Shown here in pieces: positions 1-61,185 of a DNA stretch of 64,000 nucleotides. Source of the DNA: Octopus sinensis (taxonomy: Eukaryota); contig NW_021832533.1 in NCBI RefSeq assembly GCF_006345805.1, forward strand, positions 186,001-250,000. The letters run 5' to 3'. Each line of letters begins with the position of its first letter. Positions within the stretch are counted from its first letter, which is position 1. The notes under the pieces were generated by a model. That model was not told the DNA's origin. It worked only from the letters and a program-made list of their open reading frames with translations, and made no database searches. The translations under genes and the position numbers were made by a program.

Positions 1-1310
1 ACGCAGAAAATATTTTTTTTAATTTTTTAGCTTGAAGGTTTTGGGGGACCACATCATGTGAGTCGAGGACTTTCTTGTTGTTCATTTAACACAAAAACGC
101 AGAAAATAATTTTTTTAATTTTTTAGCTTGAAGGTTTTGGGGGACCACATCATGTGAGTCGAGGACTTTCTTGTTGTTCATTTTTACAAAAAAAAACGCA
201 GAAAATAATTTTTTTTAATTTTTGGCTTGAAGGTTTGGGGGACCACATCATGTGAGTCGAGGACTTTCTTGTTGTTCATTTTAACAAAAACGCAGAAAAA
301 ATAATTTTTTTAATTTTTTGGCTTGAAGGTTTTGGGGGACCACATCATGTGAGTCGAGGACTTTCTTGTTGTTCATTTTAACAAAAACGCAGAAAATAAT
401 TTTTTAAATTTTTTAGCTTGAAGGTTTTGGGGGACCACATCATGTGAGTCGAGGACTTTCTTGTTGTTCATTTTAACAAAAACGCAGAAAATATTTTTTT
501 TAATTTTTTAGCTTAAGGTTTTGGGGGACCACATCATGTGAGTCGAGGACTTTCTTGTTGTTCATTTTTACAAAAACGCAGAAAATAATTTTTTTAATTT
601 TTTGGCTTGAAGGTTGGGGGACCACATCATGGAGTCGAGGACTTTCTTGTTGTTCATTTTAACAAAAACGCAGAAAATAATTTTTTAAATTTTTTAGTGT
701 GAAGGTTTTGGGGGACACATCATGTGAGTCGAGGACTTTCTTGTTGTTCATTTTAACAAAAACGCAGAAAATATTTTTTTTAATTTTTTAGCTTGAAGGT
801 TTTGGGGGACCACATCATGTGAGTCGAGGACTTTCTTGTTGTTCATTTTAACAAAAACGCAGAAAATAATTTTTTTAATTTTTTAGCTTGAAGGTTTTGG
901 GGGACCACATCATGTGAGTCGAGGACTTTCTTGTTGTTCATTTTTACAAAAACGCAGAAAATAATTTTTTTTAATTTTTTGGCTTGAAGGTTTGGGGGAC
1001 CACATCATGTGAGTCGAGGACTTTCTTGTTGTTCATTTTAACAAAAACGCAGAAAATAATTTTTTTTAATTTTTTTAGCTTGAAGGTTTTGGGGGACCAC
1101 ATCATGTGAGTCGAGGACTTTCTTGTTGTTCATTTTAACAAAAACGCAGAAAATAATTTTTTTAATTTTTTAGCTTGAAGGTTTTGGGGGACCACATCAT
1201 GTGAGTCGAGGACTTTCTTGTTGTTCATTTTAACAAAAACGCAGAAAATAATTTTTTTTAATTTTTTAGCTTGAAGGTTTTGTAACAAAAACGCAGAAAA
1301 TAATTTTTTT
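1..1310. repeat. ~95-bp tandem satellite, variant A (>=13 monomers)
   Basis: Monomer ...gcttgaaggttttgggggaccacatcatgtgagtcgaggactttcttgttgttcattttaacaaaaacgcagaaaataatttttt...; gtcgaggac recurs at 62, 158, 256... (~95-bp spacing); no spacers. Confidence 0.97.
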
Positions 1311-1416
1311 ATTGATCTGGTTTGTAACAATTTGAATGTGGGTGTGCACAGACAGACAGACAGACAGACACACAGACAGACAGACAGACACACACCATAC
1401 CATTTTATTATTAAGA
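1..1416 (-). mobile_element. Non-autonomous Helitron, concatemer unit 1 (5' part only; runs off the window start)
   Basis: Minus strand begins TCTTAATAATAAAATGGTATGG at 1416, then (GTCT/GTGT)n microsatellite and ~95-bp satellite; directly abuts the CTAG 3' end of unit 2 at 1417-1420. Confidence 0.88.
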
Positions 1417-1545
1417 CTAGCACAGCAGTTCGCTTCGCTCACTGCGAGCTAGCTCCTGCGGAAGCCCTGCTCGCTACGCTCGCAGTTTCCTTAAATAACT
1501 ATAAATTTATGTAGATATATAAATGCGACCTGCTTTGATATAACC

Positions 1546-2378
1546 TTATTCTAAGGCCTGTGAATAAACGATGTTTGCAGTCCGTCCATCCTTGGCAAAT
1601 ATAAATAATTTCTCTTCACCTACCCTTGAGCACCCCACATACAGCTGGCCATGTGAAAAGCACTCGTTCTCTAAAAATAAGCCTACTACCTTTAAAGACT
1701 GTCCCTGGGCCTTGTTTATTGTCATAGCAAAACTTATCTTCAGCGGAAATTGTAGTCTCTTAAATCTATCGCAGGCCCTTTCATGGTCCATAATAACGTC
1801 GACCGATTTATATATTCTTTCTCTGCCAGGGATTTTCATTAATAAATCTAAATTTATATTAAGTACCTCATCATTAAGTGGAGCTAATATAGCTCGTTCA
1901 CGCAGCCAGTCGAAATTCACGTAGTGTTCAGATAGTTCGGAATAGACGGCATTCAATAATTCTTCTGCTGTTTCTACGAAAATACATAATTCTTCCGGTA
2001 GCCTAATTTTCTGGTCGTGCATTTCTGAAGTGATTGCCCCATTTCCAATATCTAGAAGGATTTGTGGGAATATGCTATTAACGCCTTGTAAATGTGCATG
2101 TACATTTACATCTAAGCTTACCTTTTTCACGTGTGTCCACAAATATGACGATTTGAGGCAGGCATTCAATTCATCCGCAGGCGTCCCTCTTTGAATAATT
2201 GGCAGCGTCTGTCTAAAATCACCTGCCAATACAACTAATGCTCCCCCAAACAAATGGTCGCTACAATTCTTGATATCTCTATATGTTCGGTCAACTGCTT
2301 GAATGCGCCTTTATGAGCCATCGTACATTCATCCCAAACAATTAACCTAGAATGCATAATTCTATTACCCGTAGTTGA
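1546..2378 (-). pseudogene. PIF1-like helicase C-terminal fragment with internal deletion (Helitron unit 2)
   Basis: [14 protein letters not shown] and [13 protein letters not shown] motifs; near-identical to 46581-47663 but lacks ~250 bp (HERAC|DRFKRLQ join). Confidence 0.93.
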
Positions 2379-3061
2379 GTCTAACAGCAGTCCTGACCTT
2401 GTTCAGCTGTGTCTAAGTTCCCTCACCATTTAAGCACATCTTCCCTCGTTTCTCTTTTTTTGTTATATGGTTCATATTCTCTTGTTTGTTAACATTCTCA
2501 GATCTCTCTTTATAGGACATGCTTATGATTTTGTAAACGCGAATCAGTAATTTATATTAAATTTTCTACGTAAATTTATTTAGTGAAATTTATGTAAAGT
2601 GTATTATCCAATCAAAGCCATTATACTTAATTGCCTCTATGTTTAAAGGAATTGAAACTTTAGCATAATCGAACTTGTCTGTTTCGGTAAAGAAAATGAT
2701 AATCAGCTTCATCTTTGTAGTATTATAAGGAAAAAAATTAAAGCCTGTTAAATCAAGGAGATTTAAATATAGGCAAATTGAAATTTACATGACTAATTTA
2801 AATTTTATTTGCCTCTATCTTTTAAGAAATCTAAACAGTAGCATAATCGAATTTGTCAGTTTCGGCAGTTTAAAAGAATCAAATATGTAAATCTCTAATA
2901 ATTTTTGCTTTTTTTTTTTAGTGGTTTTCAAAATCTGATAATTGCACAGTCTATTCATGGTCGATAACAATTAGAGCTTTTATTTTATTTTAACGAAAAT
3001 TAACAAAAAAGAATTTATGTCATCGAAAAAAGATAGCTAAGCTAATTAATGGCCTCACGAG

Positions 3062-5250
3062 GCTTGAAGGTGTGGAGGACCTCATCATGTGAGTCGAGGA
3101 CTTTCTTGTCGTTCATTTTAACAAAAACGCAGAAAATTTTTTTTTAATTTTTGGGCTTGAAGTTTTGGGGGACCACATCATGTGAGTCGAGGACTTTCTT
3201 GTTGTTCATTTAACAAAAACGCAGAAAATAATTTTTTAAATTTTGGCTTGAAGGTTTTGAGGGACCACATCATGTGAGTCGAGGACTTTCTTGTTGTTCA
3301 TTTTAACAAAAACGCAGAAAATAATTTTTTTTAATTTTTTAGCTTGAAGGTTTTGGGGGACCACATCATGTGAGTCGAGGACTTTCTTGTTGTTCATTTT
3401 AACAAAAACGCAGAAAAAATTTTTTAATTTTTTAGCTTGAAGGTTTTGGGGGACCACATCATGTGAGTCGAGGACTTTCTTGTTGTTCATTTTAACAAAA
3501 ACGCAGAAAATAATTTTTTTTATTTTTGGCTTGAAGTTTTGGGGGACCATCATGTGAGTCGAGGACTTTCTTGTTGTTCATTTTAACAAAAAACGCAGAA
3601 AATAATTTTTTTAATTTTTTGGCTTGAAGGTTTTGGGGGACCACATCATGTGAGTCGAGGACTTTCTTGTTGTTCATTTTAACAAAAACGCAGAAAATAA
3701 TTTTTTTTAATTTTTTAGCTTGAAGGTTTTGGGGGACCACATCATGTGAGTCGAGGACTTTCTTGTTGTTCATTTTAACAAAAACGCAGAAAATAATTTT
3801 TTTAATTTTTTAGCTTGAAGGTTTTGGGGGACCACATCATGTGAGTCGAGGACTTTCTTGTTGTTCATTTTTACAAAAACGCAGAAAATAATTTTTTTTA
3901 ATTTTTTGGCTTGAAGGTTTGGGGGACCACATCATGTGAGTCGAGGACTTTCTTGTTGTTCATTTTAACAAAAACGCAGAAAATAATTTTTTAAATTTTT
4001 TAGTGTGAAGGTTTTGGGGGACCACATCATGTGAGTCGAGGACTTTCTTGTTGTTCATTTTAACAAAAACGCAGAAAATATTTTTTTTAATTTTTTAGCT
4101 TGAAGGTTTTGGGGGACCACATCATGTGAGTCGAGGACTTTCTTGTTGTTCATTTTAACAAAAACGCAGAAAATAATTTTTTTAATTTTTTAGCTTGAAG
4201 GTTTTGGGGGACCACATCATGTGAGTCGAGGACTTTCTTGTTGTTCATTTTTACAAAAACGCAGAAAATAATTTTTTTTAATTTTTTGGCTTGAAGGTTT
4301 GGGGGACCACATCATGTGAGTCGAGACTTTCTTGTTGTTCATTTTAACAAAACGCAGAAAATAATTTTTTTTAATTTTTTGGCTTGAAGGTTTGGGGGAC
4401 CACATCATGTGAGTCGAGGACTTTCTTGTTGTTCATTTTAACAAAAACGCAGAAAATAATTTTTTTAATTTTTTAGCTTGAAGGTTTTGGGGGACCACAT
4501 CATGTGAGTCGAGGACTTTCTTGTTGTTCATTTTAACAAAAACGCAGAAAATAATTTTTTAATTTTTTAGCTTGAAGGTTTTGGGGGACCACATCATGTG
4601 AGTCGAGGACTTTCTTGTTGTTCATTTTTACAAAAACGCAGAAAATAATTTTTTTTAATTTTTGGCTTGAAGGTTTGGGGGACCACATCATGTGAGTCGA
4701 GGACTTTCTTGTTGTTCATTTTACAAAAAACGCAGAAAATAATTTTTTTTAATTTTTTGGCTTGAAGGTTTGGGGGACCACATCATGTGAGTCGAGGACT
4801 TTCTTGTTGTTCATTTTAACAAAAACGCAGAAAATAATTTTTTTTAATTTTTTTGGCTTGAAGGTTTGGGGGACCACATCATGTGAGTCGAGGACTTTCT
4901 TGTTGTTCATTTTAACAAAAACGCAGAAAATAATTTTTTTAATTTTTTGGCTTGAAGGTTGGTTTGGGGGACCACATCTTGTGAGTCGAGGACTTTCTTG
5001 TTGTTCATTTTAACAAAAACCAGCAGAAATAATTTTTTTAATTTTTTGGCTTGAAGGTTTGGGGGACCACATCATGTGAGTCGAGGACTTTCTTGTTGTT
5101 CATTTTAACAAAAACGCAGAAAATAATTTTTTTTAATTTTTTGGCTTGAAGGTTTTGGGGGACCACATCATGTGAGTCGAGGACTTTCTTGTTGTTCATT
5201 TTAACAAAAACGCAGAAAATTGACTTGAAGGTTTTGGGGGACCTCATCAT
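3062..5250. repeat. ~95-bp tandem satellite, variant A (~23 monomers)
   Basis: Same monomer; first monomer is a diverged edge copy (gacctcatcatgtgag, cttgtcgttc). Confidence 0.97.
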
Positions 5251-5581
5251 CGAGGATATTCTTTCTTATTAAAATTTTTGACAGGAAGGTTCTTAGAGGA
5301 TATCAACCTTTTATTGTGCCTCATTATCGAATAACTACAAAAGGAAGGTTTGACAATTTGATCTGGTTTGTAACAATTTGAATGTGGGTGTGCACAGACA
5401 GACAGACAGACACACAGACAGACAGACACACACCATACCATTTTATTATTAAGACTAGCTCAGCAGTTCGCTTCGCTCACTGCGAGCTAGCTCCTGCGGA
5501 GGCCTGCTCGCTACGCTCGCAGTTTCCTTAAATAACTATAAATTATGTAGATATATAAATGCGACCTGCTTTGATATAACC

Positions 5582-6412
5582 TTATTCTAAGGCCTGTGGA
5601 TAAACGATGTTTGCAGTCCGTCCATCCTTGGCAAATATAAATAATTTCTCTTCTACCTACCCTTGAGCACCCCACATACAGCTGGCCATGTGAAAAGCAC
5701 TCGTTCTCTAAAAATAAGCCTACTACCTTTAAAGACTGTCCCTGGGCTTGTTTATTGTCATAGCAAAACTTATCTTCAGCGGAAATTGTAGTCTCTTAAA
5801 TCTATCGCAGGCCCTTTCATGGTCCATAATAACGTCGACCGATTTATATATTCTTTCTCTGCAGGGATTTTCATTAATAAATCTAAATTTATATTAAGTA
5901 CCTCATCATTAAGTGGAGCTAATATAGCTCGTTCACGCAGCCAGTCGAAATTCAGTAGTGTTCAGATAGTTCGGAATAGACGGCATTCAATAATTCTTCT
6001 GCTGTTTCTACGAAAATACATAATTCTTCCGGTAGCCTAATTTTCTGGTCGTGCATTTCTGAAGTGATTGCCCCATTTCCAATATCTAGAGGGATTTGTG
6101 GGAATATGCTATTAACGCCTTGTAAATGTGCATGTACATTTACATCTAAGCTTACCTTTTTCACGTGTGTCCACAAATATGACGATTTGAGGCAGGCATT
6201 CAATTCATCCGCAGGCGTCCCTCTTTGAATAATTGGCAGCGTCTGTCTAAAATCACCTGCCAATACAACTAATGCTCCCCCAAACAAATGGTCGCTACAA
6301 TTCTTGATATCTCTATATGTTCGGTCAACTGCTTGAATGCGCCTTTATGAGCCATCGTACATTCATCCCAAACAATTAACCTAGAATGCATAATTCTATT
6401 ACCCGTAGTTGA
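5582..6412 (-). pseudogene. PIF1-like helicase fragment (Helitron unit 3)
   Basis: Same fragment and same deletion junction as unit 2. Confidence 0.92.
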
Positions 6413-7099
6413 GTCTAACAGCAGTCCTGACCTTGTTCAGCTGTTGTCTAAGTTCCCTCACCATTTAAGCACATCTTCCCTCGTTTCTCTTTTTTTGTTA
6501 TATGGTTCATATTCTCTTGTTTGTTAACATTCTCAGATCTCTCTTTATAGGACATGCTTATGATTTTGTAAACGCGAATCAGTAATTTATATTAAATTTT
6601 CTACGTAAATTTATTTAGTGAAATTTATGTAAAGTGTATTATCCAATCAAAGCCATTATACTTAATTGCCTCTATGTTTAAAGGAATTGAAACTTTAGCA
6701 TAATCGAACTTGTCTGTTTCGGTAAAGAAAATGATAATCAGCTTCATCTTTGTAGTATTATAAGGAAAAAAATTAAAGCCTGTTAAATCAAGGAGATTAA
6801 ATATAGGCAAATTGAAATTTACATGACTAATTTAAATTTTATTGCCTCTATCTTTTAAGAAATCTAAACAGTAGCATAATCGAATTTGTCAGTTTCGGCA
6901 GTTAAAAAGAATCAATTATGTAAATCTCTAATAATTTTTGCTTTTTCCTTTTTAGTGGTTTTCAAAATCTGATAATTGCACAGTCTATTCATGGTCGATA
7001 ACATTAGAGCTTTTATTTTATTTTTTTAACGAAAATTTAACAAAAAGAATTTATGTCATCGAAAAAAGATAGCTAAGCTAATTAATGGCCTCACGAGGC

Positions 7100-8042
7100 T
7101 TGAAGGTTGTGGAGGACCTCATCATGTGAGTCGAGGACTTTCTTGTCGTTCATTTTAACAAAAACGCAGAAAATATTTTTTTTAATTTTGGGGCTTGAAG
7201 GTTTTGGGGGACCACATCATGTGAGTCGAGGACTTTCTTGTTGTTCATTTAACAAAAACGCAGAAAATAATTTTTTAAATTTTTTGGTTTTGAAGGTTTT
7301 GAGGGACCACATCATGTGAGTCGAGGACTTTCTTGTTGTTCATTTTTAAACAAAAAACGCAGAAAATAATTTTTTTTAATTTTTTGGCTTGAAGGTTTTG
7401 AGGGACCACATCATGTGAGTCGAGGACTTTCTTGTTGTTCATTTTAACAAAAAACGCAGAAAATAATTTTTTTTAATTTTTTGGCTTGAAGGTTTTGGGG
7501 GACCACATCATGTGAGTCGAGGACTTTCTTGTTGTTCATTTTAACAAAAACGCAGAAAATAATTTTTTTAATTTTTTGGCTTGAAGGTTTTGGGGGACCA
7601 CATCATGTGAGTCGAGGACTTTCTTGTTGTTCATTTTAACAAAAACGCAGAAAATAATTTTTTTTAATTTTTTGGCTTGAAGGTTTTGGGGGACCACATC
7701 ATGTGAGTCGAGGACTTTCTTGTTGTTCATTTTAACAAAAACGCAGAAAATAATTTTTTTAATTTTTGGCTTGAAGGTTTTGGGGGACCACATCATGTGA
7801 GTCGAGGACTTTCTTGTTTTTATTTTAACAAAAACGCAGAAAATAATTTTTTTAATTTTTTGGCTTGAAAGTTTTGGGGGACCACATCATGTGAGTCGAG
7901 GACTTTCTGTTGTTCATTTTAACAAAAACGCAGAAAATAATTTTTTTAATTTTTTACCTTGAAGGTTTTGGGGGACCACATCATGTGAGTCGAGGACTTT
8001 CTTGTTGTTCATTTTAACAAAAACGCAGAAAATAATTTTTTT
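7100..8042. repeat. ~95-bp tandem satellite, variant A (~10 monomers)
   Basis: Counted gtcgaggac occurrences. Confidence 0.97.
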
Positions 8043-8285
8043 ATTGATCTGGTTTGTAACAATTTGAATGTGGGTGTGCACAGACAGACAGACACACAGA
8101 CAGACACACAGACAGACAGACAGACAGACACACACCATACCATTTTATTATTAAGACTAGCTCAGCAGTTCGCTTCGCTCACTGCGAGCTAGCTCCTGCG
8201 GAGGCCCTGCTCGCTACGCTCGCAGTTTCCTTAAATAACTATAAATTTATGTAGATATATAAATGCGACCTGCTTTGATATAACC

Positions 8286-9118
8286 TTATTCTAAGGCCTG
8301 TGGATAAACGATGTTTGCAGTCCGTCCATCCTTGGCAAATATAAATAAATTTCTCTTCTACCTACCCTTGAGCACCCCACATACAGCTGGCCATGTGAAA
8401 AGCACTCGTTCTCTAAAATAAGCCTACTACCTTTAAAGACTGTCCCTGGGCCTTGTTTATTGTCATAGCAAAACTTATCTTCAGCGGAAATTGTAGTCTC
8501 TTAAATCTATCGCAGGCCCTTTCATGGTCCATAATAACGTCGACCGATTTATATATTCTTTCTCTGCCAGGGATTTTCATTAATAAATCTAAATTTATAT
8601 TAAGTACCTCATCATTAAGTGGAGCTAATATAGCTCGTTCACGCAGCCAGTCGAAATTCACGTAGTGTTCAGATAGTTCGGAATAGACGGCATTCAATAA
8701 TTCTTCTGCTGTTTCTACGAAAATACATAATTCTTCCGGTAGCCTAATTTTCTGGTCGTGCATTTCTGAAGTGATTGCCCCATTTCCAATATCTAGAGGA
8801 TTTGTGGGAATATGCTATTAACGCCTTGTAAATGTGCATGTACATTTACATCTAAGCTTACCTTTTTCACGTGTGTCCACAAATATGACGATTTGAGAGC
8901 AGGCATTCAATTCATCCGCAGCGTCCCTCTTTGAATAATTGGCAGCGTCTGTCTAAAATCACCTGCCAATACAACTAATGCTCCCCCAAACAAATGGTCG
9001 CTACAATTCTTGATATCTCTATATGTTCGGTCAACTGCTTGAATGCGCCTTTTGAGCCCATCGTACATTCATCCCAAACAATTAACCTAGAATGCATAAT
9101 TCTATTACCCGTAGTTGA
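8286..9118 (-). pseudogene. PIF1-like helicase fragment (Helitron unit 4)
   Basis: Same fragment and same deletion junction as unit 2. Confidence 0.92.
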
Positions 9119-9811
9119 GTTTAACAGCAGTCCTGACCTTGTTCAGCTGTTGTCTAAGTTCCCTCACCATTTAAGCACATCTCCCTCGTTTCTCTTTTTT
9201 TGTTATATGGTTCATATTCTCTTGTTTGTTAACATTCTCAGATCTCTCTTTATAGGACATTCTTATGATTTTGTAAACGCGAATCAGTAATTTATATTAA
9301 ATTTTCTACGTAATTTATTTAGTGAAATTTATGTAAAGTGTATTATCCAATCAAAGCCATTATACTTAATTGCCTCTATGTTTAAAGGAATTGAAACTTT
9401 AGCATAATCGAACTTGTCTGTTTCGGTAAAGAAAATGATAATCAGCTTCATCTTTGTAGATATTATAAGAAAAAAAATTAAAGCCTGTTAAATCAAGGAG
9501 ATTTAAATATAGGCAAATTGAAATTTACATGACTAATTTAAATTTTATTGCCTCTATCTTTTAAGAAATCTAAACAGTAGCATAATCGAATTTGTCAGTT
9601 TCGGCAGTTAAAAAGAATCAATTATGTAATCTCTAATAATTTTTGCTTTTTCTTTTTCCTTTTTAGTGGTTTTCAAAATCTGATAATTGCACAGTCTATT
9701 CATGGTCGATAACAATTAGAGCTTTTATTTTATTTTTTAACGAAAATTTAACAAAAAAAGAATTTATGTCATCGAAAAAAGATAGCTAAGCTAATTAATG
9801 GCCTCACGAGG

Positions 9812-10965
9812 CTTGAAGGTTGTGGAGGACCTCATCATGTGAGTCGAGGACTTTCTTGTCGTTCATTTTTACAAAAACGCAGAAAATATTTTTTTTAATT
9901 TTTGGCTTGAAGGTTTTGGGGGACCACATCATGTGAGTCGAGGACTTTCTTGTTGTTCATTTAACAAAAACGCAGAAAATAATTTTTTTTAATTTTTTGG
10001 CTTGAAGGTTTTGAGGGACCACATCATGTGAGTCGAGGACTTTCTTGTTGTTCATTTTAACAAAAACGCAGAAAATAATTTTTTTAATTTTTTGGCTTGA
10101 AGGTTTTGAGGGACCACATCATGTGAGTCGAGGACTTTCTTGTTGTTCATTTTAACAAAAACGCAGAAAATAATTTTTTTATTTTTTGGCTTGAAGGTTT
10201 TGGGGGACCACATCATGTGAGTCGAGGACTTTCTTGTTGTTTATTTTAACAAAAACGCAGAAAAAATAATTTTTTTAATTTTTTGGCTTGAAAGTTTTGG
10301 GGGACCACATCTTGTGAGTCGAGGACTTTCTTGTTGTTCATTTTAACAAAAACGCAGAAAATAATTTTTTTTAATTTTTTGGCTTGAAGGTTTTGGGGAC
10401 CACATCATGTGAGTCGAGGACTTTCTTGTTGTTCATTTAACAAAAACGCAGAAAATAATTTTTTTTAATTTTTTGGCTTGAAGGTTTTGGGGGACCACAT
10501 CATGTGAGTCGAGGACTTTCTTGTTGTTCATTTTTACAAAAACGCAAAAATAATTTTTTTTAATTTTTTGGCTTGAAGGTTTTGGGGGACCACATCATGT
10601 GAGTCGAGGACTTTCTTGTTGTTCATTTTAACAAAAACGCAGAAAATAATTTTTTTTAATTTTTTGGCTTGAAGTTTTGGGGGACCACATCATGTGAGTC
10701 GAGGACTTTCTTGTTGTTCATTTTAACAAAAACGCAGAAAATAATTTTTTTTAATTTTTTGGCTTGAAGGTTTTGGGGGACCACATCATGTGAGTCGAGG
10801 ACTTTCTTGTTGTTCATTTTAACAAAAACGCAGAAAATAATTTTTTTAATTTTTTGGCTTGAAGGTTTTGGGGGACCACATCATGTGAGTCGAGGACTTT
10901 CTTGTTGTTCATTTTAACAAAAACGCAGAAAATTGACTTGAAGGTTTTGGGGACCTCATCATCGA
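9812..10965. repeat. ~95-bp tandem satellite, variant A (~12 monomers)
   Basis: Counted gtcgaggac occurrences. Confidence 0.97.
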
Positions 10966-11463
10966 GGATATTCTTTCTTATTAAAATTTTTTGACAGGAA
11001 GGTTCTTAGAGGATATCAACCTTTATTGTGCCTCATTATCGAATAACTACAAAAGGGAAGGTTTTGACAATTTGATCTGGTTTGTAACAATTTGAATGTG
11101 GGTGTGCACAGACAGACAGACAGACAGACAGACACACAGACAGACAGACAGACACACACCATACCATTTTATTATTAAGATTTATCACATTTGTATAATT
11201 GAATTCTTAGTTGATGTAAATATTCTAATTGGTAAATCAAATCAGAATTCTTCGACTAGTCTACTCAGAATTGACATGAAAGAATTAAATCGTGAATTTT
11301 CACTTCTGCCATTTGCTATGTGCTCATTAAAAATGTGACAATCAATAGAAAAGGTATATTAAAAATGTTAACTGTAAAATAAACCAAGATTTTAAACAAA
11401 TTAGTTTTAATGCCTTATTTAATATTTTTGACTTGTTTCCATAGAAGCAGACGCAACGAAGAG

Positions 11464-31311: not shown

Positions 31312-31993
31312 TTAAATAAGCCGACAAAGGGCAGTCTTTTTGGGCTGAGGAGTGAAGACCTGTTTCATAGCCTCATCAAAGACCTCCTTGACCCGAATCA
31401 ATTGCATGGCCGAACACTCGATGTACTTGGCGGCCTCTGTAAGTGAGGACATGGAAGGAACTGAGTCTCTTGGCCTCCTCGACTGCCATTTGGTAGGAGA
31501 TGGGGACCTGTCCGTTGGCCGCCAACTTTTTACTGGCCTCGTCGTCATCTCGGAGGTCACTCTTAGTGCCGACGAGAATGAAGGGAGTGGTAGGACAGTG
31601 TGCCTGTATTTCGGGGACCCACTGAGAGTAAGGTTGGACACCCACCTTGGAGGCCACGTTTTTGAATGACTGAGGGGACATGACAGAGAAACAGACGATG
31701 AAGACGTCCTGAGGGTAAGAGAGGGAGGGGACTGTTTGAGGGTAGGAGAGAGGTCTGAGACGGTCGTAGTCCTCCTGTCCTGCCGTGTCCCACAGTCCCA
31801 ACTGGACGTGTGTGCTTGTATTGCTCGTCTGGGCCATCACTCGCATTGTGTAGTTGTCGAACACTGTGGGCACGTACTGCTCGGGAAACGTGTTGGTCGT
31901 GTAACTCACCAGCAGACATGTCTTGCCCACTGCACTGCCAATCACTACACTCCCTCACCCATCTCCTACTATCACACATTTTACGTGCTGCAT
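31312..31993 (-). CDS. Rac1: Rac-subfamily Rho GTPase, 4 introns (24, 24, 24, 25 nt)
   Basis: [12 protein letters not shown]|[37 protein letters not shown]|DVF (Trp at Rac position 56), TKSD, YIECSA, C-terminal CRLI CAAX. Introns 31935-31958, 31709-31732, 31622-31645, 31437-31461. Confidence 0.93.
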
Positions 31994-32165
31994 TTCCGGA
32001 TTAATCTTATTAATTTATTTATTCTCCATATTCCTATTCTTTTATTTTATTAATAACCCACTTATTTTATTTATCAATCAAAACTCGAAATATCTAAATG
32101 ACTATTTAAATATTAGATAACAAATGGTACCACATCACTCAACTAGAATGGACATTTTATTACAA

Positions 32166-32954
32166 TTATTTAAAAGCATGATCCAACAACTTGGGTGGAG
32201 GACTGAACAGTCCATCAATGAAGCAGTCGGGCAACTTGTCCTCCAACAACAACCCAATCAAGTCCGCATTCTCCACTCCAGTCATATTGAATGCTCTCAA
32301 TCTTTTCAAATTCCTCAACCGTGCTAAAAACAACAAAACTGAAAGCAATGAAGCGTGGCAAGGCCTCTCTCACTGACCGAAGAACACCCACTCAAGTCCA
32401 AGTAGCGAAGGGAGTCACTAAAAGTCCTCAACCTGGCCACCACAAAGTCATCCACGTTGACACATTCACTTAAATCAATATAATTTAAATTTTCACATTT
32501 ATCTATAAATATATATAATAAATATATATATAATATATATATAACCAATATAATCCAGAATATCATAGAAAAATAAAGTGCCCGAGGCGTTGATAGCCTC
32601 CAGTCGAAGACCAGGGACAAAGCAGGTGGGGAGGGAATGGAGGGAGGTGACCCACCTGGGAGGTCCTTTTATGGGCAAACCGGTCTTGGTCGTGGAACTT
32701 GACTGCCCCTTTGTAGGAGAGGATTATGTTGGCTGAGGCTATTTCATCCCCCCACACCAGTTTTTTGTCGCATTTCTTTCTAGTTTTGTCGGGTGGCTGC
32801 CTCACTTGAATCGTTGTTGGTATTTGTCCATTAAGTTGAGGGACAGCATCTCCATTAGTGTTTCTGTGTTTGATATATTCCATAAATATTTCAAATATTG
32901 CTGGAAGCTGCGTTCTGGTTTGTAAAACAGTTTATTTGCAAGGTTTTTCAACAT
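32166..32954 (-). CDS. DMAC2: DMAC2/ATP5SL-like mitochondrial complex I assembly factor (LRR), 4 short introns
   Basis: Spliced product ...ASANIILSYKGAVKF..., LEAINASG, YIDLSECVNVDDFVVARL...SLRYLDLSGCSSVSERGLATLHCFQ|NLKRL...LLEDKLPDC matches DMAC2 C-terminal motifs (from memory); introns 26, 25, ~41, 26 nt. Confidence 0.8.
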
Positions 32955-33080
32955 GAGTATAATCCCCACAAGAACCTTTTTGAAATTTATTTAATTTAAA
33001 TTTTAAAAATACTTGCGTGACGTGGGTATTTTGTGACCAATAATAAAATGAAATAAAATAATGTTAGAAATATTAAAAAG

Positions 33081-33902
33081 TCAATTATTCCTAAAATAGT
33101 CAATTCCTGCCTGATTGATGAGTGCAATGTGCTAGAAAGTGAGCCAAACAAACAAACAGGGACATCCCTGAACTCCTGGTTGTAGTCAAACCCCATCCCC
33201 ACGATGAATCTGTCAGGAATACTGAACCCCACGACTATATATAGTCCAATAGTAGTACAGTCTGCAGGCATCGTCGGCTTGGCCAGTCGTTTAGAAATAA
33301 AAAAGGCGGTTTTGACAGAGAGGGGATCATACTCGGCCAGAACCTCCTTTAGCTTGGTTATAGTCCTCCCAGTATCCACAATGTCTTCAAGAATAAGAAC
33401 ATTCTAATTAATAATAATTTATATTTAATTAATTATTATTAAAATAATAATTTACCTTCTGGCGAACACAGGATAACACCTGGGGGGAGAATACACTCAC
33501 ACTTCCGGTCGACTGGTCGTTCTGGTGGTAACATTAGTGATTAAACCAGATAACTGGCAGTCCTGATGAATTCCAAATGGAACCTCACATAGGATTCCTT
33601 CGAAGAGGAGAGATTGAGACGTTCCATAGCCTCAGTGACCTTCACAGTGAACTTGAATGCCCCTTTGAGAACACAGAGGAGAATGAGGGACTGTCCTTTA
33701 TATATATTCCATATTTCATTGCTCATTTCATTAATCCTACTGCATTAGTAGTGCTGTGTGCCTGTCCACTGCCTCCTCCTGTGGAATTAAAATGTCGTCT
33801 ATGAAGGGGCGGTAAAATTCGGGCAATTCGAATTGGTCCGCGTTATTTCGCTCGTGGTCGTCAGGTATCTGTTTGTCACGTGCTAACACTAACCGTTATC
33901 AT
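33081..33902 (-). CDS. HPRT1: Hypoxanthine-guanine phosphoribosyltransferase
   Basis: LCVLKGAFKF, FIRTASYL|NDQSTG, NVLILEDIVDTGRT, VGFSIPDRFIVGMGFDYNQEFRD; six introns (25, 25 GC-AG, 25, ~49, 24, 26 nt). Confidence 0.95.
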
Positions 33903-34031
33903 TCCACGTCACCAATTATATTTATTAGCATTTTTAAATTTTAAAAAATAATAAATTAATTTAGAACAAGTTTTGACGTGGTGCTTTCCCGCGTCCAAAA
34001 ATGTCACTAAAAATGCCTGGAGTTATATATA

Positions 34032-34740
34032 CAGTGAACAACAATAAAAACTAATAAATCGTCATTTTTATTATCAATTTTATTAAATTAAAAACTTAAG
34101 CATGATAATATCATCTATATTTTTTAAGTTTATAATATTTATCCATAAATCTTTTTAAAATATTGAGAATAAAGCAAAAACCGATTTTTTAAGACAAAAA
34201 ATTCCGGACAAATGTCAAAAAATAAAATATCAGTAAGGAATATGCTTTCCTCTCGATTTATATAACTCTAAACTACGAGTTTTCATCGAATTTATTAATT
34301 TTCGAATAAAATCAGTTGGAATTTTATTCCAAATTTCTAATATTTTATCCTTTTGTTGATGTTTATTTTTTTGTCGATTTTTTGTATCATCCCTCGATAA
34401 TTCATATTTAATTTTCGACCAAATATGTTCAATGGGATTCATATCGAGGAATTGTGCCGGCCAATCAAGTAAATTAATTTTGTTTGCAGAAAAATACTCC
34501 TTTGTTGCTTTCGAAGTATGACATGGGGCATTGTCTTGCTGGAATATGAAGCTGTTTAATCCCATTTTTATGGCTGATTTTTCCAGATTGTTAGCAAGAA
34601 TGTTTATATATTGTCCTGAGTTTATTTTTTCATCGATGAAACATTACGAACCCATTCCAAAATATGAATATCATCCCCAGACCATAATTTTGCCGCCACC
34701 GCTAGTCATTGAATTCGTTCAAATTCAATCATAGCTAATC
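34032..34740 (-). mobile_element. Tc1-like element, 3' half (DD34E region) with one TIR
   Basis: FQQDNAPCH...WPAQFLDMNPIEHIW; TA|CAGTG terminus at 34030-34036. Confidence 0.85.
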
Positions 34741-35029
34741 ATTGAACATCTGAAGAAAAGGCAGAATAATTGGCATGTATAAATCTGGAAAAACATACTG
34801 AGAAATACAAGAATCAGCAAAAGATTCCTCAGAACGATATCGCAAATTATCAGAAGCTATTTAAATAAGTGCTCAACAAACAAACAAGTCGGGTCTGGTT
34901 GACCATCGTTGCTCAATCGTCAATAAATATTTTAAAGAGGTTTGAAATGAGGATGTCAATTTAAACTGTTTTAAATTTGCCAAAACATTTACAAAAAAGA
35001 ATGGAAATCAGCTCAAAGAATAAGAAAAA

Positions 35030-36597
35030 TTATTTTCCATCAATTAGTTTGAGAACTCTGCCAAAGGCAATAGTCCTGCCCTCATCCCTGAGAATAATCC
35101 TCCCCAGAATGGGCAGGTCGGCAGCCACGGCCACACAGATGGGCTCCTCCACAGCCAAGACCACCTCACATCGACTGTCCGTCCTCAGGAAACGAGGATT
35201 CCTCACCTTCTCCTCCCCCATCTCCTGAGTACTCACCAGCCGTCGGAATGTCACCTGGTGAGTCACGTGGTGGATGTGCATCATGGCGGGAAAACCAGCA
35301 CAAATTATATTCGACAGGTCCATTGTCACTATCTACACACTCTAATTGACACTACACCTCCACTTTGAAGTTCTTGGCCATTTTGACTGGATGTTCGGGG
35401 GGACACATCACAGAGCCCACTGAGATCTCCTAAATCACGTTTTTTAGTCACAACAAACATCTTCTGAGGCTCCCAGGATTCTCAGACGGATATTATAGCC
35501 TGGACTCGACTGCTCGACCTCAATCTCGTCCACCATCACTTGGGAGACCGTGACAGTCACCTTATTAAATTAAATATTAATTTTAATTAATTTTAATTAT
35601 TATTATCAATATATTAATAATATACTTTGGCGGGAAGAATCATTAGTTTTTGTCCTGTGGTGACAGTCCCACACTCCAGTTTGCCAAAAACCATTGTCCC
35701 GATTATTATTGCCTTGTCGGCCACCAAAAACCTGACTGGGTGGTCAGGCCTTCGATCAATTGGCTCCAGACTGTCCAACAGACCCAGAAAAGTCCACTTT
35801 CTTTGCATTACTCGAGCAATCAGACCTAAACCAGGGACACACAGCCACAGGAGGCATTTCCTTAAGGAAAGACCCGTCAAACCCCGAGCAAGGCATAATA
35901 AAGCACTCAGACTTGGAGAATCCCAACTGTTTCAAAAAGGGCGCCAATTTCGCGCCACAGAATTTAAACCTTTGGCGGGAAAAGTGTGAAATTACCTTTG
36001 TTCAGCCCAGGTGACAGAGGGGTCATCCATTTTATTAATAAGGACAATAAGATATTTAATGCCAGAAGCGCGGGCAATGATGGCATGTTCCCGCGTCTGC
36101 CCGCCCTTGTCAAAGCCTGCCTCGAACTCCCCCGCCCTGGCCGAGATGACGAGTACTGCCACGTCTGCCTGGACCACCCCGTTGATCATGTTGGGGACAT
36201 ATGCCTTGTGGCCTGGAGCGTCCAATATAGTCACGTGCTTCTTGGGGGTTTTGAAGTAGGCACACCCCACTTCCACTGTCTTGCCTTTTTCCCGCTCTTC
36301 CGGGTTGGTGTCGAGAGCATAGGAGAGGTACCTCACACATTACAGTTGGGAGTACCACGACTCACGGTTTAGTTCCCGCGCTTCTGCCTCGTACTTCTCC
36401 AATGTTCTCTTGCTTATCATTCCTGTTAGGAGCATTAGGTTCCCGCCAATTGTCGATTTTCCCGCGTCCACGTGGCCAATGAAGATTATATTTATGTTAT
36501 CTTTTTTGCCCAAATCGGCTGTCTCTTCATTTGGTGGTGCTGGTTGATTATATATTAATATTTTACTGTCCTCGTGCTCCAGATCATACCCCACCAT
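35030..36597 (-). CDS. GSPT1: Eukaryotic peptide chain release factor 3 (eRF3/GSPT), short N-terminus, about 7 introns
   Basis: FIGHVDAGKST, RESW|YLSYALDTNPEEREKGKTVEVG, LDAPGH, GQTREH, LINKMDDP, C-terminal GRIILRDEGRTIAFG; introns of 24-29 nt plus one ~66 nt. Confidence 0.95.
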
Positions 36598-46181: not shown

Positions 46182-46580
46182 AATATAAGCTCCTTTTCTG
46201 TGATCAATTGACAATATTGATATATTTTCTGTCAATGAACGACTGATGATTAGTGAAAAATGCAGTATCTAATGATTTGTTGGAGGTTCTCGTAGATACT
46301 ACAATAAATAGTTAAGTTTGATCGGAAACACGAATGAGTAATTATTGAAAAAAGTTATAGGCTGGAAGATGTATTAGTGCAATGTACTTTTCACCGAATT
46401 ATTATTGCATAACCTCACAAATTTTCTTATTTACAGATATCTTATGAATAACTAGCTCAGCAGTTCGCTTCGCTCACTGCGAGCTAGCTCCTGCGGAGGC
46501 CCTGCTCGCTACGCTCGCAGTTTCCTTAAATAACTATAAATTTATGTAGATATATAAATGCGACCTGCTTTGATATAACC

Positions 46581-49500
46581 TTATTCTAAGGCCTGTGGAT
46601 AAACGATGTTTGCAGTCCGTCCATCCTTGGCAAATATAAATAAATTTTCTCTTCTACCTACCCTTGAGCACCCCACATACAGCTGGCCATGTGAAAAGCA
46701 CTCGTTCTCTAAAAATAAGCCTACTACCTTTAAAGACTGTCCCTGGGCCTTGTTTATTGTCATAGCAAAACTTATCTTCAGCGGAAATTGTAGTCTCTTA
46801 AATCTAAAAGGTAATTCTTCCGAAATCAGAGGTATTCGTGGGATATAAACATCCTCACCTCTGTAATTACCTGTTAATATTGTCGCTTCTATTACGTTAG
46901 CCATCAAATTCTTGATAACCAACCTTGTACCATTGCATAATTTAGGTGGCGCAAGATTGCGGAGTAACACAACCGGTACACCTATTTTTAATTTCAATAG
47001 ATGATTCGGCATTCCAGATGGATCTAAGGAATTTAAAAATTCTACAGGATATTCGCAGGCCCTTTCATGGTCCATAATAACGTCGACCGATTTATATATT
47101 CTTTCTCTGCCAGGGATTTTCATTAATAAATCTAAATTTATATTAAGTACCTCATCATTAAGTGGAGCTAATATAGCTCGTTCACGCAGCCAGTCGAAAT
47201 TCACGTAGTGTTCAGATAGTTCGGAATAGACGGCATTCAATAATTCTTCTGCTGTTTCTACGAAAATACATAATTCTTCCGGTAGCCTAATTTTCTGGTC
47301 TTGCATTTCTGAAGTGATTGCCCCATTTCCAATATCTAGAAGGATTTGTGGGAATATGCTATTAACGCCTTGTAAATGTGCACGTACATTTACATCTAAG
47401 CTTACCTTTTTCACGTGTGTCCACAAATATGACGATTTGAGGCAGGCATTCAATTCATCCGCAGGCGTCCCTCTTTGAATAATTGGCAGCGTCTGTCTAA
47501 AATCACCTGCCAATACAACTATTGCTCCCCCAAATAAATGGTCGCTACAATTCTTGATATCTCTATATGTTCGATCAACTGCTTCGAATGCGCCTTTATG
47601 AGCCATCGTACATTCATCCCAAACAATTAACCTAGAATGCATAATTCTATTACCCGTAGTTGAATTTTTTTTACATTACAAACCGGTTCAGTAGTATATG
47701 AGAGATTCAACGGAATGTTGAATGTCGAATGTGCGGTTCGACCGCCATCTAAAAGAGTTGCAGCAATTCCAGAAGATGCAACTGCTAAAGCTAGTTTATT
47801 TTCGCTTCTGACCTTAGCTAATAATAGATTTAGAAGATAGGTCTTACCTGTTCCACCCGGTGCATCAATAAAAATGATAGAACCGTTTTCTTCTTGGATG
47901 ACTCGATTAATTTCTCTGTATACCTCCAACTGGCCAGTGGTTAAGCTTTGTCTCTTTCTTCCACTATTGTTCGAAGTTCTTCTAAATTATAATGCTCATC
48001 AAATGAATTAATATTATGAATATCGCTGATTATAAAACCAAATTCACCTATACTCTTACCAACGATAGATATTAGCAATCTATCTATCATGATTAATCCA
48101 ATGTTGAAAATCTCTGCATCGAAACTCAATCTATTCTTCTCTCTTAATATATCTTCACACATGCTTTCTCGGTGACCTTCCCACAGTTGTTGTGGATTTG
48201 CTAACCCACAATGGGCTAGCATCAAAGTAAATAAATACCTTAGTCGCGATGGGGAATCTGCAAGTTCAGCTTCTGTTAAAGTCTGATTCCAGTGATTATC
48301 ATCCTCTAAAAGACCTAATTTAAAACAGGCTTCTCTGTATGTTTCGCAGAGTACTCCATCTACAGTCCGTAGATCAGTGAAAGATTCTGGCCCTCGTACG
48401 GTGTGCAAAAGTAACCTAACACAATAACATTCAAAATTATTTGGATGCACTGTATATACTCTACCCAATGCATCTGCACTTACAATTCCTGAATGTCCAT
48501 TTACTGGATTTCCTCTTATCCTTCTCTTAAATCTCTTCCCCGCGACATCCCATGTATAATATCTAGGAACATCAACATAATATATAGTCTTTGCAAATTG
48601 ATCTGTACGACATAATTCGAAGAATGCCATCAGAGTTGAATTTCTTGCATTTGTAACTTGATTGCGTGCATTCTGCTCTGTGAAATAAATTCTTTGCCCA
48701 TTTTCCAGGTGAACCCCTAAATGCATAACCAATGGATATCTTTCATGAATCGGATATCCAAAAATTCTCCATGCTCCTTCATTACTGCAGATATAGCGTC
48801 CATGTTGATAAAAAGTTGGCTCATCACGTTGCTCTATTGAAAAGATTGCCTGATCTGACCCTTTATTAATGTACTTACATACATATTTAATTGATCTAAT
48901 TGAATTACAAAATTCCACATTGATATGTGCATCAAAAATCTTACTTAATAGTGGATTATAAGGCACTATCCATCTGTTATCAACTGTTATTTCATTTTCT
49001 TTTCCTTCGTGGAGGGTTGCAGTATATCCTCCTTCAGCTGCTCCCCTTCTCTGGTAAAATGGAAATCCATTTTCACCTGTTTGCGTGTTAATTATTAAGT
49101 TTTTTGGGTACCCTTTAGAACACTTACCATCTTGCATACACGGTGATGATCTGTTATATATGCCACACGGACCATGTATCATATTTCTTTTGATGATCTC
49201 GTATAATTCTCTATCTTCATTTGGATTTGGCAATTCTGCCCGTATGCAATCGTCTATCTCTGTAGGCCTAATTTTAGTTACTAACCATACTAATATATGT
49301 ATATGTGGTAACCTCTTTTTGCCACTCTACTGTATACATGTGGCATCTTGTCTTCCCAAAAATCTGTCCCTTGCATAGAAGATCAATCATCTTATCGACT
49401 TTTTGTTTAAAAACACGTGCTATGATGTCTTGTCTATACTCGACCTTTTGTCCTACAAATATGTTATCACTAATTTCTGGCCATTTCGGATTACACGTAA

Positions 49501-52200
49501 AAGTGATAAACAGATCCGGAGTTCCGTAATTTCTAACGTATGTCATAGCATCTTGAGTTCGCTCATGCATATATCTTGGTCCTCCCGTGAATGACGAAGG
49601 CAAAATAACCATTTGACCTACATTAGACACATTACCGTCATTCATTATGGCATCTCTTAGATGTATATACTCTTCTGCTCTCAGTTTCCGCTGATTCAAC
49701 CGAATGTAGAGAAGTCTCTCTGCCTCTATTTTCGCATACATATCTACAATAAACTGATTAAATAACTGGCCTGTACGATGTAGAATGTTGAATTCCTGCT
49801 CTCTTTCATCAACCTATAAGAATAAAATTCCATACAACTGGTTTTTTAGTAGTAGTTAAACCAGTCGACGGATTAAAATGCATTACCTTAAAATTGTACC
49901 CATCCTCTCCTCTCGGAAATAATAATGGGTACTGAAGTGCATCATATGACCGATGTGTCTCTGAAATTCTCATTAATCCAGTGGATCTCTTGTTTATTAT
50001 TATGTCTCTCGAGTCATAGTGTTGACCTACTATTAGAATTCCAACCTGGTTTGACGTTGGTGCGTTGTATCGACGGTTATGTTCATTTGCAGGTGTCCTA
50101 TCTGCATGTATAATTACCTTACAATCTTCATCTGCTGTGGATCTCAGAACAGATCTAAAAGATGAAATATACGTGTTGCACATTTGCAACATATTTTGCA
50201 ACGAACTAATAATGTTGCCTCGTAGTCTTGAATCTGCTAGACATCTTCGGTTAGATTGTTCTTCGTGATTATCTATAAAGTAATTTGTAAAAAGTTAAAA
50301 TCCTCGCCTTCACTTGGAAGGAGTGAACCCATCCTGTGATACACTTGCCCAAGTACCTTAAATGTGGGCATATAGCCCGTCGGATTGAAATTTCCACTTG
50401 TACCAAAAGATGTCATCTGAAAAACATTATTGTACCTGCGAAATTATCAACGAAGTGCCTAGATGATGGTGTATCATTCCTCAACAGTGTTAAAAGAGGC
50501 TCAGGAGGCGGGTCTAAAACTGGTAAACGTACCTTTCCGCGACTGCAGCACATTCCGATAGTTTCCCCTTAAATTTCATAGCTAAACAAAAAGTACATAT
50601 CTCCGTTAAAGCACCTACATTACCTAAATTTCTATACTCAATGCCCCTATTATAATTAAATCCAGTGTTTTCTAACCAATAGAATTTGATACCCTACTAT
50701 TCCTGCGTGAAACTCGTAGTCGATTTTCTGTCTGATGTTCATCCTGAGTTAGTTGGTTCCTCCTAACTGAATTTCTTCTTGTGTTCCGATCTCGTCGGCA
50801 TTCCCTTTGTTGTTGTGACTCTTGTTCCCTACTAATAGCCGTTGCCATTCTATCTTGTTCTTGCCTATGTTCCCTCTGTTCTTGAGTCTCTTGTTCCCTA
50901 CTAATAGCAGTTCCCATTCTATCTTGCTCTTGCCTATGTTCCCTTTGTTCTTTTGTCTCTTGTTCCCTACTAATAGCCGTTGCCATTCTATCTTGTTTTT
51001 GTCTATGTTCCCTTGTTGTTGTGACTCTTGTTCCCTACTAATAGCCGTTGCCATTCTATCTTGTTCTTGCCTATGTTCCCTCTGTTCTTGAGTCTCTTGT
51101 TCCCTACTAATAGCCGTTGCCATTCTATCTTGTTCTTGCCTATGTTCCCTCTGTTCTTGAGTCTCTTTTCCTACTAATAGCAGTTCCCATTCTATTTGCT
51201 CTTGCCTATGTTCCCTTTGTTCTTCTGTCTCTTGTTCCCTACTAATAGCCGTTGCCATTCTATCTTGTTCTTGTCTATGTTCCCTCTGTTCTTGTGACTC
51301 TTGTTCCCTACTAATAGCCTTCCCCATTCTATCTTGTTCCTGCCTATGTTCCCTCTGTTCTTGTGACTCTTGTTCCCTACTAATAGCCTTCCCCTTCTAT
51401 CTTGTTCTGCCTATGTTCCCTCTGTTCTTGTGACTCTTGTTCCCTACTAATAGCCTTCCCCATTCTATCTTGTTCTTGTCTATGTTCCCTCTGTTCTTGT
51501 GACTCTTGTTCCCTAGTAATAGCCTTCCCCATTATATCTTGTTCTTTTCTGAAATTCCTCATATCATCGGTCTCTGCCTCCTTCTATATAGTTGCTCTTA
51601 ATCTGTTGCATTCTTGTCGATGTTCCTTTTGATCTTGTGACTCGGCTGCCCTTTTCATAGCCATGCGCAATCTATTCTTTTCTCGTCTAAAATTTGAGAT
51701 CGAAAACGTCTCATTTGAACTATTTACTTTAATGTTAAATTTATTATCTAGACTAACACTCATATCATCGAAACTATATCGTTTAAAATTATTATTTCCT
51801 ACACTAACTTTTTTACGTTTCGTGCTACATAAATTATTTAAAACCTGTGTATTTTCCAAATATTCTTTGTTTCTCAATAGGTAATCCGTTTCCATACACT
51901 AAAAATAAATCTAATATTAATACCTCTTTACTGAAGTTATTTTCATCGAAACGGATCGATTGATGATCTTCTGACAACTGATGAGTAATCTTATTTTCTC
52001 TGACAATACATAGCCTACACTACCTACATTTCCTGCACCTAGATTACCTACGCATGCACCTACACTACCTACACTCCCTGCGCCCACATTTCCTGCATTT
52101 CCTACACCTATATTACCTATGCCCGCACCTACATTACTTACACTCCCCCCAAGCTCAGTTTGTTCGTTTGTTTTGGCATCCACGATATCTTCGGTGTGAA
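46581..52200 (-). CDS. Helitron RepHel (HUH replication initiator + PIF1 helicase); reading frame broken by single-base deletions; 5' start approximate
   Basis: C..C...CC..GK motif (~50.5-50.6 kb), [27 protein letters not shown](RG)[43 protein letters not shown]; no C-terminal endonuclease. Confidence 0.93.
50780..51560 (-). repeat. 63-bp coding tandem repeat (21-aa unit [21 protein letters not shown]) in the RepHel N-terminus, ~12 copies
   Basis: Directly visible periodicity; charged helical repeats are common at RepHel N-termini. Confidence 0.9.
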
Positions 52201-52899
52201 ACTCTCCATATTCTGACTACCCACCATACTAATCTTATTTTTTACGCCACGCAGTAATACATATTGAACATTTAACGCTCTTAAGCCTTGTCTTATCTTA
52301 ATTGCTATCTGAAGTGGTTGTCTAATCAAGGTCACTAAGCCTAATTTCCGTAAACTGTAAAGGGCTCTTAAGCCTTATCTTAATTGCTATCTGAAGTAAT
52401 TTGTCTAATCAAGGTCACTAAGCTAAATTTCCGGAAACTGTAAAGGGCTCTTAAGCATTATCTTAATAGGCTGTTAAAAAATTGACAGGTTGTTAAAGAT
52501 AAGTGAAAATAAGAATTAATCTAATTTTAATTCAAAGTAAATAATTTTTAAGTGAAAATAAGAATCAATTAAGAGATCCAGCTCGATCTGCGTGCTCGAC
52601 GGGGCAGGGGTTAGAGCCCAGCAGTACGGTTGCTTCCGCGTTCCGCGCACGGTTTGTTGAAGTGTGCACACACGGCGGCAGACAAATTTTTAAAGTTTTT
52701 TTGTTATTTTCTTTTTTTATTTTAAAAAATTTTTTTTTTATTTTATGAATTTTTTTTTGTGTTTTTATTTTTTTATTTTTGGTTTTTATTGTGTGTTTTT
52801 ATTTATCTAATAATAAAATGGTATGGTGTGTGTCTGTCTGTGTGTCTGTCTGTGTGTCTGTCTGTCTGTCTGTGTGTGCACACCAACTTCAAATTGGCA

Positions 52900-59520: not shown

Positions 59521-59540
59521 ATTTGGGTGAGATGGGGGGA

Positions 59541-61090: not shown

Positions 61091-61185
61091 ATTGCCAATT
61101 TGAAGTTGGTGTGCACCCACAGACAGACAGACAGACAACCAGACAGACAGACAGCACACACCATACCATTTTATTATTAAGATAT

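Follow-up and report, generated by a model that had tools for sequence, protein, structure and literature searches.

The transposase of Helraiser, a Helitron transposon of the bat Myotis lucifugus, produces covalently closed circles in which the 5′-TC is joined directly to CTAG-3′, double-stranded circles of this kind serve as transposition donors, and the purified enzyme both forms and cleaves such junctions (PMC4778049; PMC5876387). The preferred target is AT within AT-rich DNA (PMC4778049). Head-to-tail Helitron junctions and arrays are known from bats and plants, and genomic tandem arrays have been read as footprints of rolling-circle transposition (PMC5876387). Tandem copies have been listed from M. 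lucifugus, Drosophila, rice, maize, and Metarhizium (PMC5148889), and tandem arrays from Arabidopsis and other plants (Xiong et al. 2016, as cited in PMC11934779). A further tandem array lies on the Drosophila pseudoobscura Y chromosome. Tandem insertions in Drosophila are reportedly also the subject of Dias et al. 2016. Here we analyze a cephalopod locus of this kind, in a stretch of 64,000 nucleotides (nt) of the Octopus sinensis genome (RefSeq assembly GCF_006345805.1, contig NW_021832533.1, forward-strand positions 186,001 to 250,000), hereafter called the window. In positions 1–11180 of the window, a single non-autonomous canonical Helitron is repeated in tandem at least four times, always on the minus strand.

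The array comprises three complete units (U1, U2, and U3) and one partial unit (U0) that reaches the window start (coordinates of all features, Table 1), as anticipated by an earlier inspection of the bare letters (the sequence-only reading), which had claimed at least four units over more than 11 kb. Read 5′ to 3′, a unit opens with TC and a 20-nt AT-rich end (5′-TCTTAATAATAAAATGGTATGG), which is followed by a (TG)n(TCTG)n microsatellite, a leader, an array of a 95-base-pair (bp) satellite, an AT-rich spacer of ~700 nt, a remnant of a PIF1-type helicase of ~830 nt, a short 3′ untranslated stretch, a palindrome, and CTAG-3′. Because the copy number of the internal satellite ranges from 10 to 23, the units differ in length. 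The satellite blocks alternate with about 1.65 kb of non-satellite DNA that is 99.0–99.5% identical between blocks, and the window's first 11.2 kb are AT-rich, with a GC (guanine plus cytosine) content of about 0.35.

The units are joined without filler. At 1416/1417, 5454/5455, and 8156/8157 the 3′ CTAG of one unit directly abuts the 5′ TC of the next, with 0 bases between them (CTAG/TC, the slash marking the joint), so that the plus strand reads GACTAG from 1415, 5453, and 8155. The bare hexamer is uninformative, as its 11 further matches in the window look like chance; the junctions are significant because of the terminus blocks that flank them. The exact 22-nt 5′ terminus TCTTAATAATAAAATGGTATGG occurs five times in the window (1395–1416, 5433–5454, 8135–8156, 11159–11180, and 61161–61182), and an exact 27-nt block just inside the 3′ end occurs four times (1423–1449, 5461–5487, 8163–8189, and 46458–46484), with 0 matches to either block expected from shuffled sequences. 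Three times the two blocks are parted only by the last 6 nt of the element, which end in CTAG. Thus, the three exact joints of the sequence-only reading held up, as did its claim that only the outermost 5′ end of the array adjoins a host A.

The termini themselves were defined independently of the junctions, by three other Helitron copies in the window that show A/TC and CTAG/T boundaries. The A/TC boundary with a host flank is found at 11181/11180, 61183/61182, and 52805/52806, and the CTAG/T boundary with a host flank at 46452/46451 and 58385/58386. Homology opens with TC at 1416, 5454, 8156, 11180, 61182, and 52806, and closes with CTAG at 1417, 5455, 8157, 46452, and 58385, as well as at 11982 in another O. 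sinensis Helitron, L001 (VCDQ01013506.1, 5677–11982). A host A thus stands before three independent 5′ ends; behind independent 3′ ends, a T is found twice in the window and once in L001, the array's own 3′ flank lying beyond the window.

At the 3′ end of the units lies a palindrome with a 12-bp stem and one bulge, CTAGCTCGCAGT-11 nt-ACTGC(T)GAGCTAG (folding free energy −11.6 kcal/mol, z score −3.45), which contains the terminal CTAG itself and is conserved in L001. An alternative stem upstream of it folds with −17.9 kcal/mol (z score −2.3). In U1 only, an A-to-T change at 1421 (position −5 from the 3′ end) weakens the palindrome from −11.6 to −8.7 kcal/mol, and a further substitution in U1, C to T, falls in the region of the upstream stem-loop; the junction beside this palindrome is still exact.

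What remains of coding capacity in the units is a fragment of the helicase. In U1, an open reading frame (ORF) of 235 amino acids (1546–2253, minus strand) matches the Pfam family PIF1 (E = 7.8e-16). Among solved structures it comes closest to Helraiser (7lcc), the transposase of the bat Helitron, aligning at residues 1169–1333 and 1411–1459, the intervening stretch being absent. An in-frame deletion of 246 nt that removes the PIF1 2B domain is identical in 3/3 complete units, with the plus-strand breakpoint CCTGCGA/TAGATTT. An autonomous-type copy of the same family, located elsewhere in the window (46452–61182, minus strand), retains the missing 246 nt as its positions 47052–46807. Relative to that copy, the complete units also have in common five substitutions and a 1-nt frameshift. 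The sequence-only reading had rightly seen a shared internal PIF1 deletion, and its description of the unit as a PIF1-deleted element was correct but incomplete: the units also lack Rep and the N-terminal half of the helicase, and they carry an unrelated AT-rich spacer in addition to the frameshift. Homology with the autonomous-type copy starts at the helicase Walker B motif (47663 in that copy), and the last 1216 nt are 98–99% identical outside the deletion. The spacer of about 700 nt has no counterpart there, and between the two the satellites agree at only about 80% of positions. Together, the shared deletion, substitutions, and frameshift identify the units as copies of one dead non-autonomous derivative, and their common descent is plain.

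The units belong to the canonical Helitrons (Helitron1), based on their TC and CTAG termini, the A and T flanks, the 3′ palindrome, and the RepHel domains of the autonomous-type copy. The 5′ end is TC, the 3′ end has the CTRR form (as CTAG), and a hairpin lies near the 3′ end; the RepHel domains assigned to the family were predicted in the copy at 46452–52805, the array units keeping only the dead C-terminal fragment of PIF1. The units have no terminal inverted repeats, only 5 of 22 positions agreeing when the 5′ end is set against the reverse-complemented 3′ end, and a Pfam search found no endonuclease domain in the ORFs of the autonomous-type copy. We also considered the Helentron/Helitron2 group, to which the satellite-bearing elements of bivalves, with their internal satellite and microsatellite, belong, and rejected it on the grounds that terminal inverted repeats are missing and that the flanks are A and T rather than a TT target. 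The array is recognized as such by its three filler-free right-end-to-left-end CTAG/TC joints and by the single orientation of all units.

Although descended from one derivative, the units are mosaics. A long leader (L; about 150 nt, made of two degenerate monomers, following the microsatellite) is present in U3 and U1, and a short leader (S) in U2 and U0, with the identical breakpoint CCAGATCAAT/AAAAAAATTAT. The satellites of U3 and U2 consist of AAGCC-type monomers only, and those of U1 and U0 have a common higher-order arrangement of AAGCC and AAGCT monomers, in which a rare TTCACACT monomer occupies the same position of the pattern; the satellite monomers at the 3′ edge are common to all units. 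The leaders therefore alternate (L-S-L-S), whereas the satellite types group by neighbors (U3 with U2, and U1 with U0). Such a mosaic requires either exchange or conversion between units or stepwise growth of the array, and is not accounted for by one amplification of a single monomer followed by point mutation alone. It also speaks against trivial stuttering of the assembly, though other assembly errors may be present. The non-satellite parts of U1–U3 (within 1417–9809) differ mostly by indels of 1 nt, with 31 indel columns, 26 of them in homopolymers, versus 17 substitution columns. Substitution columns unique to one unit number 8 in U1, 8 in U3, and 1 in U2, with 5 of those in U3 amounting to a single local alignment shift at a GGCTCAT/GGGCTCA site. 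Because residual long-read error is likely, single-base differences and breaks of reading frames in the window should be read cautiously.

We compared the array with the known systems. Helibat/Helraiser of M. lucifugus shares with the array 5′-TC and CTAG-3′ ends, TC joined directly to CTAG, and probably the A/T target, and it is the best solved relative of the array's helicase fragment. Compared with the Helraiser circles, the joint of the array is chromosomal, is present three times, and occurs in a mollusc, between non-autonomous units that have a satellite inside. The palindrome of Helraiser lies upstream of its terminal CTAG, whereas that of the array includes it. The plant arrays (Xiong, Dooner and Du 2016, Plant J) and the array on the D. 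pseudoobscura Y, which were found by searching for the last bases of the element fused to the first, are also head-to-tail and were interpreted as rolling-circle concatemers; they often consist of truncated copies in centromeric or Y heterochromatin, whereas the complete octopus units run end to end, in surroundings that are, within the window, rich in transposable elements and gene fragments. A central tandem repeat is likewise found in Drosophila DINE-TR1, in the oyster Helentron derivatives Cg_HINE, and in the Paramecium Helitrons built as left end, satellite, and right end; the array units add a microsatellite to this central repeat, all inside a short non-autonomous rolling-circle element, an arrangement through which a transposon can give rise to satellite DNA. 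Their termini and probable target are nevertheless those of a canonical Helitron, in contrast to the Helentron/Helitron2-type termini and target of Cg_HINE, and they differ from satellite-carrying Helitron-like elements in that the whole element is itself tandemly repeated.

Within O. sinensis, L001 shows the same A/TC boundary, AT-rich end, (TG)n(TCTG)n microsatellite, satellites, RepHel, palindrome, and CTAG/T boundary as the family in the window. Identity reaches 97% over the last ~250 nt, and single 95-nt monomers match those of the array at 94–96%. However, L001 stands alone, its 5′ end sequence differs, and its coding DNA is only about 72% identical (74% for the helicase protein, O. sinensis being the source of the closest named helicase); no tandem junction was found in the 30 kb examined. 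Aligning L001 7543–11982 with window positions 46452–50700 revealed an abrupt shift in identity, from about 72% in the coding region to 97% in the last ~250 nt, which include the palindrome. This shift suggests that 3′ ends may have been exchanged or shared between Helitron subfamilies. Scans of metagenome collections with the 27-mer from near the 3′ end and with a conserved 5′ 23-mer returned no matches, and six ORFs encoded in the window had no exact match in a collection of 15 billion proteins.

How did the array arise? We favor, at somewhat better than an even chance, an origin in a multimer made by RepHel acting in trans. An autonomous relative, such as the copy 35 kb away, would have supplied RepHel and thereby produced a Helitron multimer with intact end-to-end joints, either because rolling-circle replication of a joined-end (circular) intermediate did not terminate at the right end or through some equivalent joining of ends. 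A single AT site would have received this multimer, which would later have been remodeled by gene conversion or unequal exchange, both among the units and inside the internal satellites. The sequence-only reading had pointed to head-to-tail joints as the expected product of rolling-circle or circular intermediates, as the Helraiser circles confirm (PMC4778049; PMC5876387). Its proposal that a deleted derivative was amplified at one locus is right in that the unit is shared and deleted, but the heterogeneity of the units means that a single amplification of one monomer is not the whole story. We infer, rather than observe, the enzymatic origin of the junctions, the integration at one site, and the order of events, and several points weigh against this history. 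Whether the array is real depends on the quality of the assembly, and the predominance of indels among the unit differences suggests a noisy long-read assembly with residual errors. The outer 3′ end of the array lies beyond the window, and it is by deduction that we place the integration at a single AT site. A multimer made in one step should consist of identical units, so the alternating leaders and the two satellite types call for extra events. Finally, the sequence alone fits a multimer and serial insertion at A/TC alike, and later unequal crossing-over too.

In one rival history, the transposase made only one or a few junctions, for example those of a dimer, and the copy number was raised mostly by later unequal crossing-over or sister-chromatid exchange between units, as happens in macrosatellites generally. 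We consider this history possible but fairly improbable. It would explain why the leaders and the satellites follow different patterns, which requires exchange or conversion between units, and it agrees with satellite copy numbers that span 9.9 to 22.8. In addition, the opening monomer of U2 is of the T type (AAGGT), which recalls the AAGCT of the first full monomers in U0, and from there on U2 is U3-like, a switch that is the expected result of a crossover inside the satellite. Against it, no simple series of exchanges starting from a dimer gave the observed order, as far as we could reason, and the divergence of the non-satellite parts is star-like, with no nested pairs. Neither a dimer that underwent one or two unequal crossovers nor the integration of a circle through homologous recombination offered a simple path to the order of the units.

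Exact CTAG/TC joints would also result, with no multimer involved, if successive elements had each inserted independently into the AT step formed by the host A and the initial T of a resident 5′ TC. The A/TC boundary does recreate the preferred dinucleotide AT within AT-rich sequence (TCTTAATAATAAAAT), and Helraiser favors AT in AT-rich DNA (PMC4778049); the same alternative has been raised for three tandem copies in Metarhizium (PMC5148889), and different source copies could explain the structural differences between units. Nonetheless, we judge serial insertion to be unlikely, given that three insertions at one dinucleotide of a gigabase-scale genome would be very improbable unless the left end were targeted, that all units share a private deletion, frameshift, and substitutions, and that the sole independent Helitron-into-Helitron insertion in the window (52806–58385) is internal rather than at an end. 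Least probable, and in our view very unlikely, is an artefact in which the assembler strung together one element, or copies from different loci or haplotypes. The indel-rich, homopolymer-type differences between units do point to a noisy long-read assembly, and repeats of 2.7–4 kb at 99% identity are error-prone to assemble, but the four units are structurally distinct (two leaders, two satellite types, and 10–23 monomers) and so are not stutter copies. Moreover, the exact junction occurs three times with unit-specific variants beside it, such as the U1-only A-to-T change at −5, and a mis-join of separate loci would carry host flanks along. The L-S-L-S order of the leaders also admits a doubtful extension of the multimer model, in which the amplified unit would have been a heterodimer, the transposase reading through its internal junction and replicating the two-unit multimer as one transposon.

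The other Helitrons of the window form a separate complex. The autonomous-type copy amounts to about 9.1 kb when the insert nested within it is excluded, and the two halves on either side of this insert probably form one element, judging from their matching T-rich flanks. Its minus-strand ORFs at 46581–50201 gave Pfam matches to Helitron_like_N (3.7e-45), PIF1 (4.4e-29 and 3.5e-26), and Pif1_2B (6.6e-18). The RepHel frame is split into at least five ORFs, reflecting either real breaks or long-read indel errors, and a copy of this kind is the sort of element that would supply RepHel in trans. The insert is a diverged plus-strand Helitron (3′ end about 81% identical; weak hairpin, z score −0.37) that itself contains a long interspersed nuclear element (LINE), making three levels of nesting. 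A 69-nt tandem repeat at 50801–51546 (10.9 copies, 91% matches), in the ORFs upstream of the Rep domain, encodes a reiterated motif of 23 protein letters. Repeats of 101–102 nt lie in opposite orientation in the nested element (57416–57712, plus strand) and in the autonomous-type copy (60120–60312), and a 44-nt piece of this repeat occurs in the spacer of the array (U3 unit positions 1473–1516, counted from the 5′ TC at 11180).

Between the array and these elements, intronless-looking fragments of three genes lie on the minus strand within 5 kb of one another: those of a Ras-family GTPase (31376–31945), an HPRT-like phosphoribosyltransferase (32996–33379), and an eRF3/EF-Tu-type GTPase (35992–36336). 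A protein search with the eRF3-like ORF returned mixed taxa, at no more than 76% identity (over 84% of the query) and at 75% with full coverage. The fragments could be retrocopies or captured gene fragments; scans of the window for the termini of the array's Helitron family found none near 31376–36336. The segment 25855–28000 is GC-rich (0.50), is strongly C- and T-skewed (GC skew −0.43, AT skew −0.31), and holds long overlapping ORFs on both strands, which had no Pfam match. Scanning all of the window against Rfam with gathering thresholds gave no matches.

Table 1. Helitron features of the window.
Feature	Positions	Strand	Remarks
U0	1–1416	−	partial, 1416 nt; 5′ terminus, S leader
U0 95-bp satellite	1–1282	−	at least 13.5 copies
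U0 microsatellite (TG)n(TCTG)n	1349–1392	−	
Junction 1	1415–1420	−	U1 CTAG (1420–1417) on U0 TC (1416–1415); no filler
U1	1417–5454	−	4038 nt; L leader; 5′ terminus at 5454
U1 terminal palindrome	1417–1456	−	
U1 PIF1-derived pseudogene	1546–2378	−	deletion point 1768/1769
U1 AT-rich spacer	about 2379–3060	−	
U1 satellite	3061–5220	−	22.8 copies; AAGCC/AAGCT higher-order pattern
U1 microsatellite	5395–5430	−	
Junction 2	5453–5458	−	U2 CTAG on U1 TC
U2	5455–8156	−	2702 nt; S leader, breakpoint as in U0
U2 PIF1 fragment	5582–6412	−	deletion point 5804/5805
U2 satellite	7097–8043	−	9.9 copies; AAGCC type
U2 microsatellite	8081–8132	−	
Junction 3	8155–8160	−	U3 CTAG on U2 TC
U3	8157–11180	−	3024 nt; L leader; outermost 5′ TC at 11180
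U3 PIF1 fragment	8286–9118	−	deletion point 8509/8510
U3 satellite	9810–10933	−	11.8 copies; AAGCC type
U3 microsatellite	11109–11156	−	
Host A before outer 5′ TC	11181	−	T on plus strand; AT-rich unique flank beyond
Autonomous-type Helitron, same family, 3′ part	46452–52805	−	predicted RepHel domains; CTAG/T at 46452/46451
Nested diverged non-autonomous Helitron	52806–58385	+	A/TC...CTAG/T; own 95-bp satellite
LINE inside 95-bp satellite of nested Helitron	about 54290–57026	−	endonuclease and reverse-transcriptase ORFs
Autonomous-type Helitron, probable 5′ part	58386–61182	−	A/TC at 61183/61182, microsatellite, A-rich low-complexity tract
94-bp satellite of autonomous-type copy	60489–61088	−	about 80% identical to array satellite

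The phenomenon that the array represents is already known, down to the CTAG/TC joint, and the array leaves knowledge of the Helitron mechanism unchanged. New here are the host lineage (our literature searches brought up no earlier account of tandem Helitron arrays from a cephalopod), the presence of a 95-bp satellite within a tandem unit of ~3 kb, and the mosaic structure of the units. Arrays of this class can confuse the assembly and the repeat annotation of octopus genomes. The array is probably a clean footprint, left in nature, of the right-end-to-left-end joining seen for Helraiser in cultured cells, and each of its internal junctions could in principle serve as a circle-like donor site. 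If the amplified unit was indeed a heterodimer, the array would be natural evidence that Helitron multimers are mobile and amplifiable, and it would show how a Helitron that bears a satellite can pass directly into a two-level satellite with higher-order structure, the 95-bp repeat nested in a ~3-kb repeat. Whatever its exact history, the array shows a transposon becoming a nested satellite, or macrosatellite.

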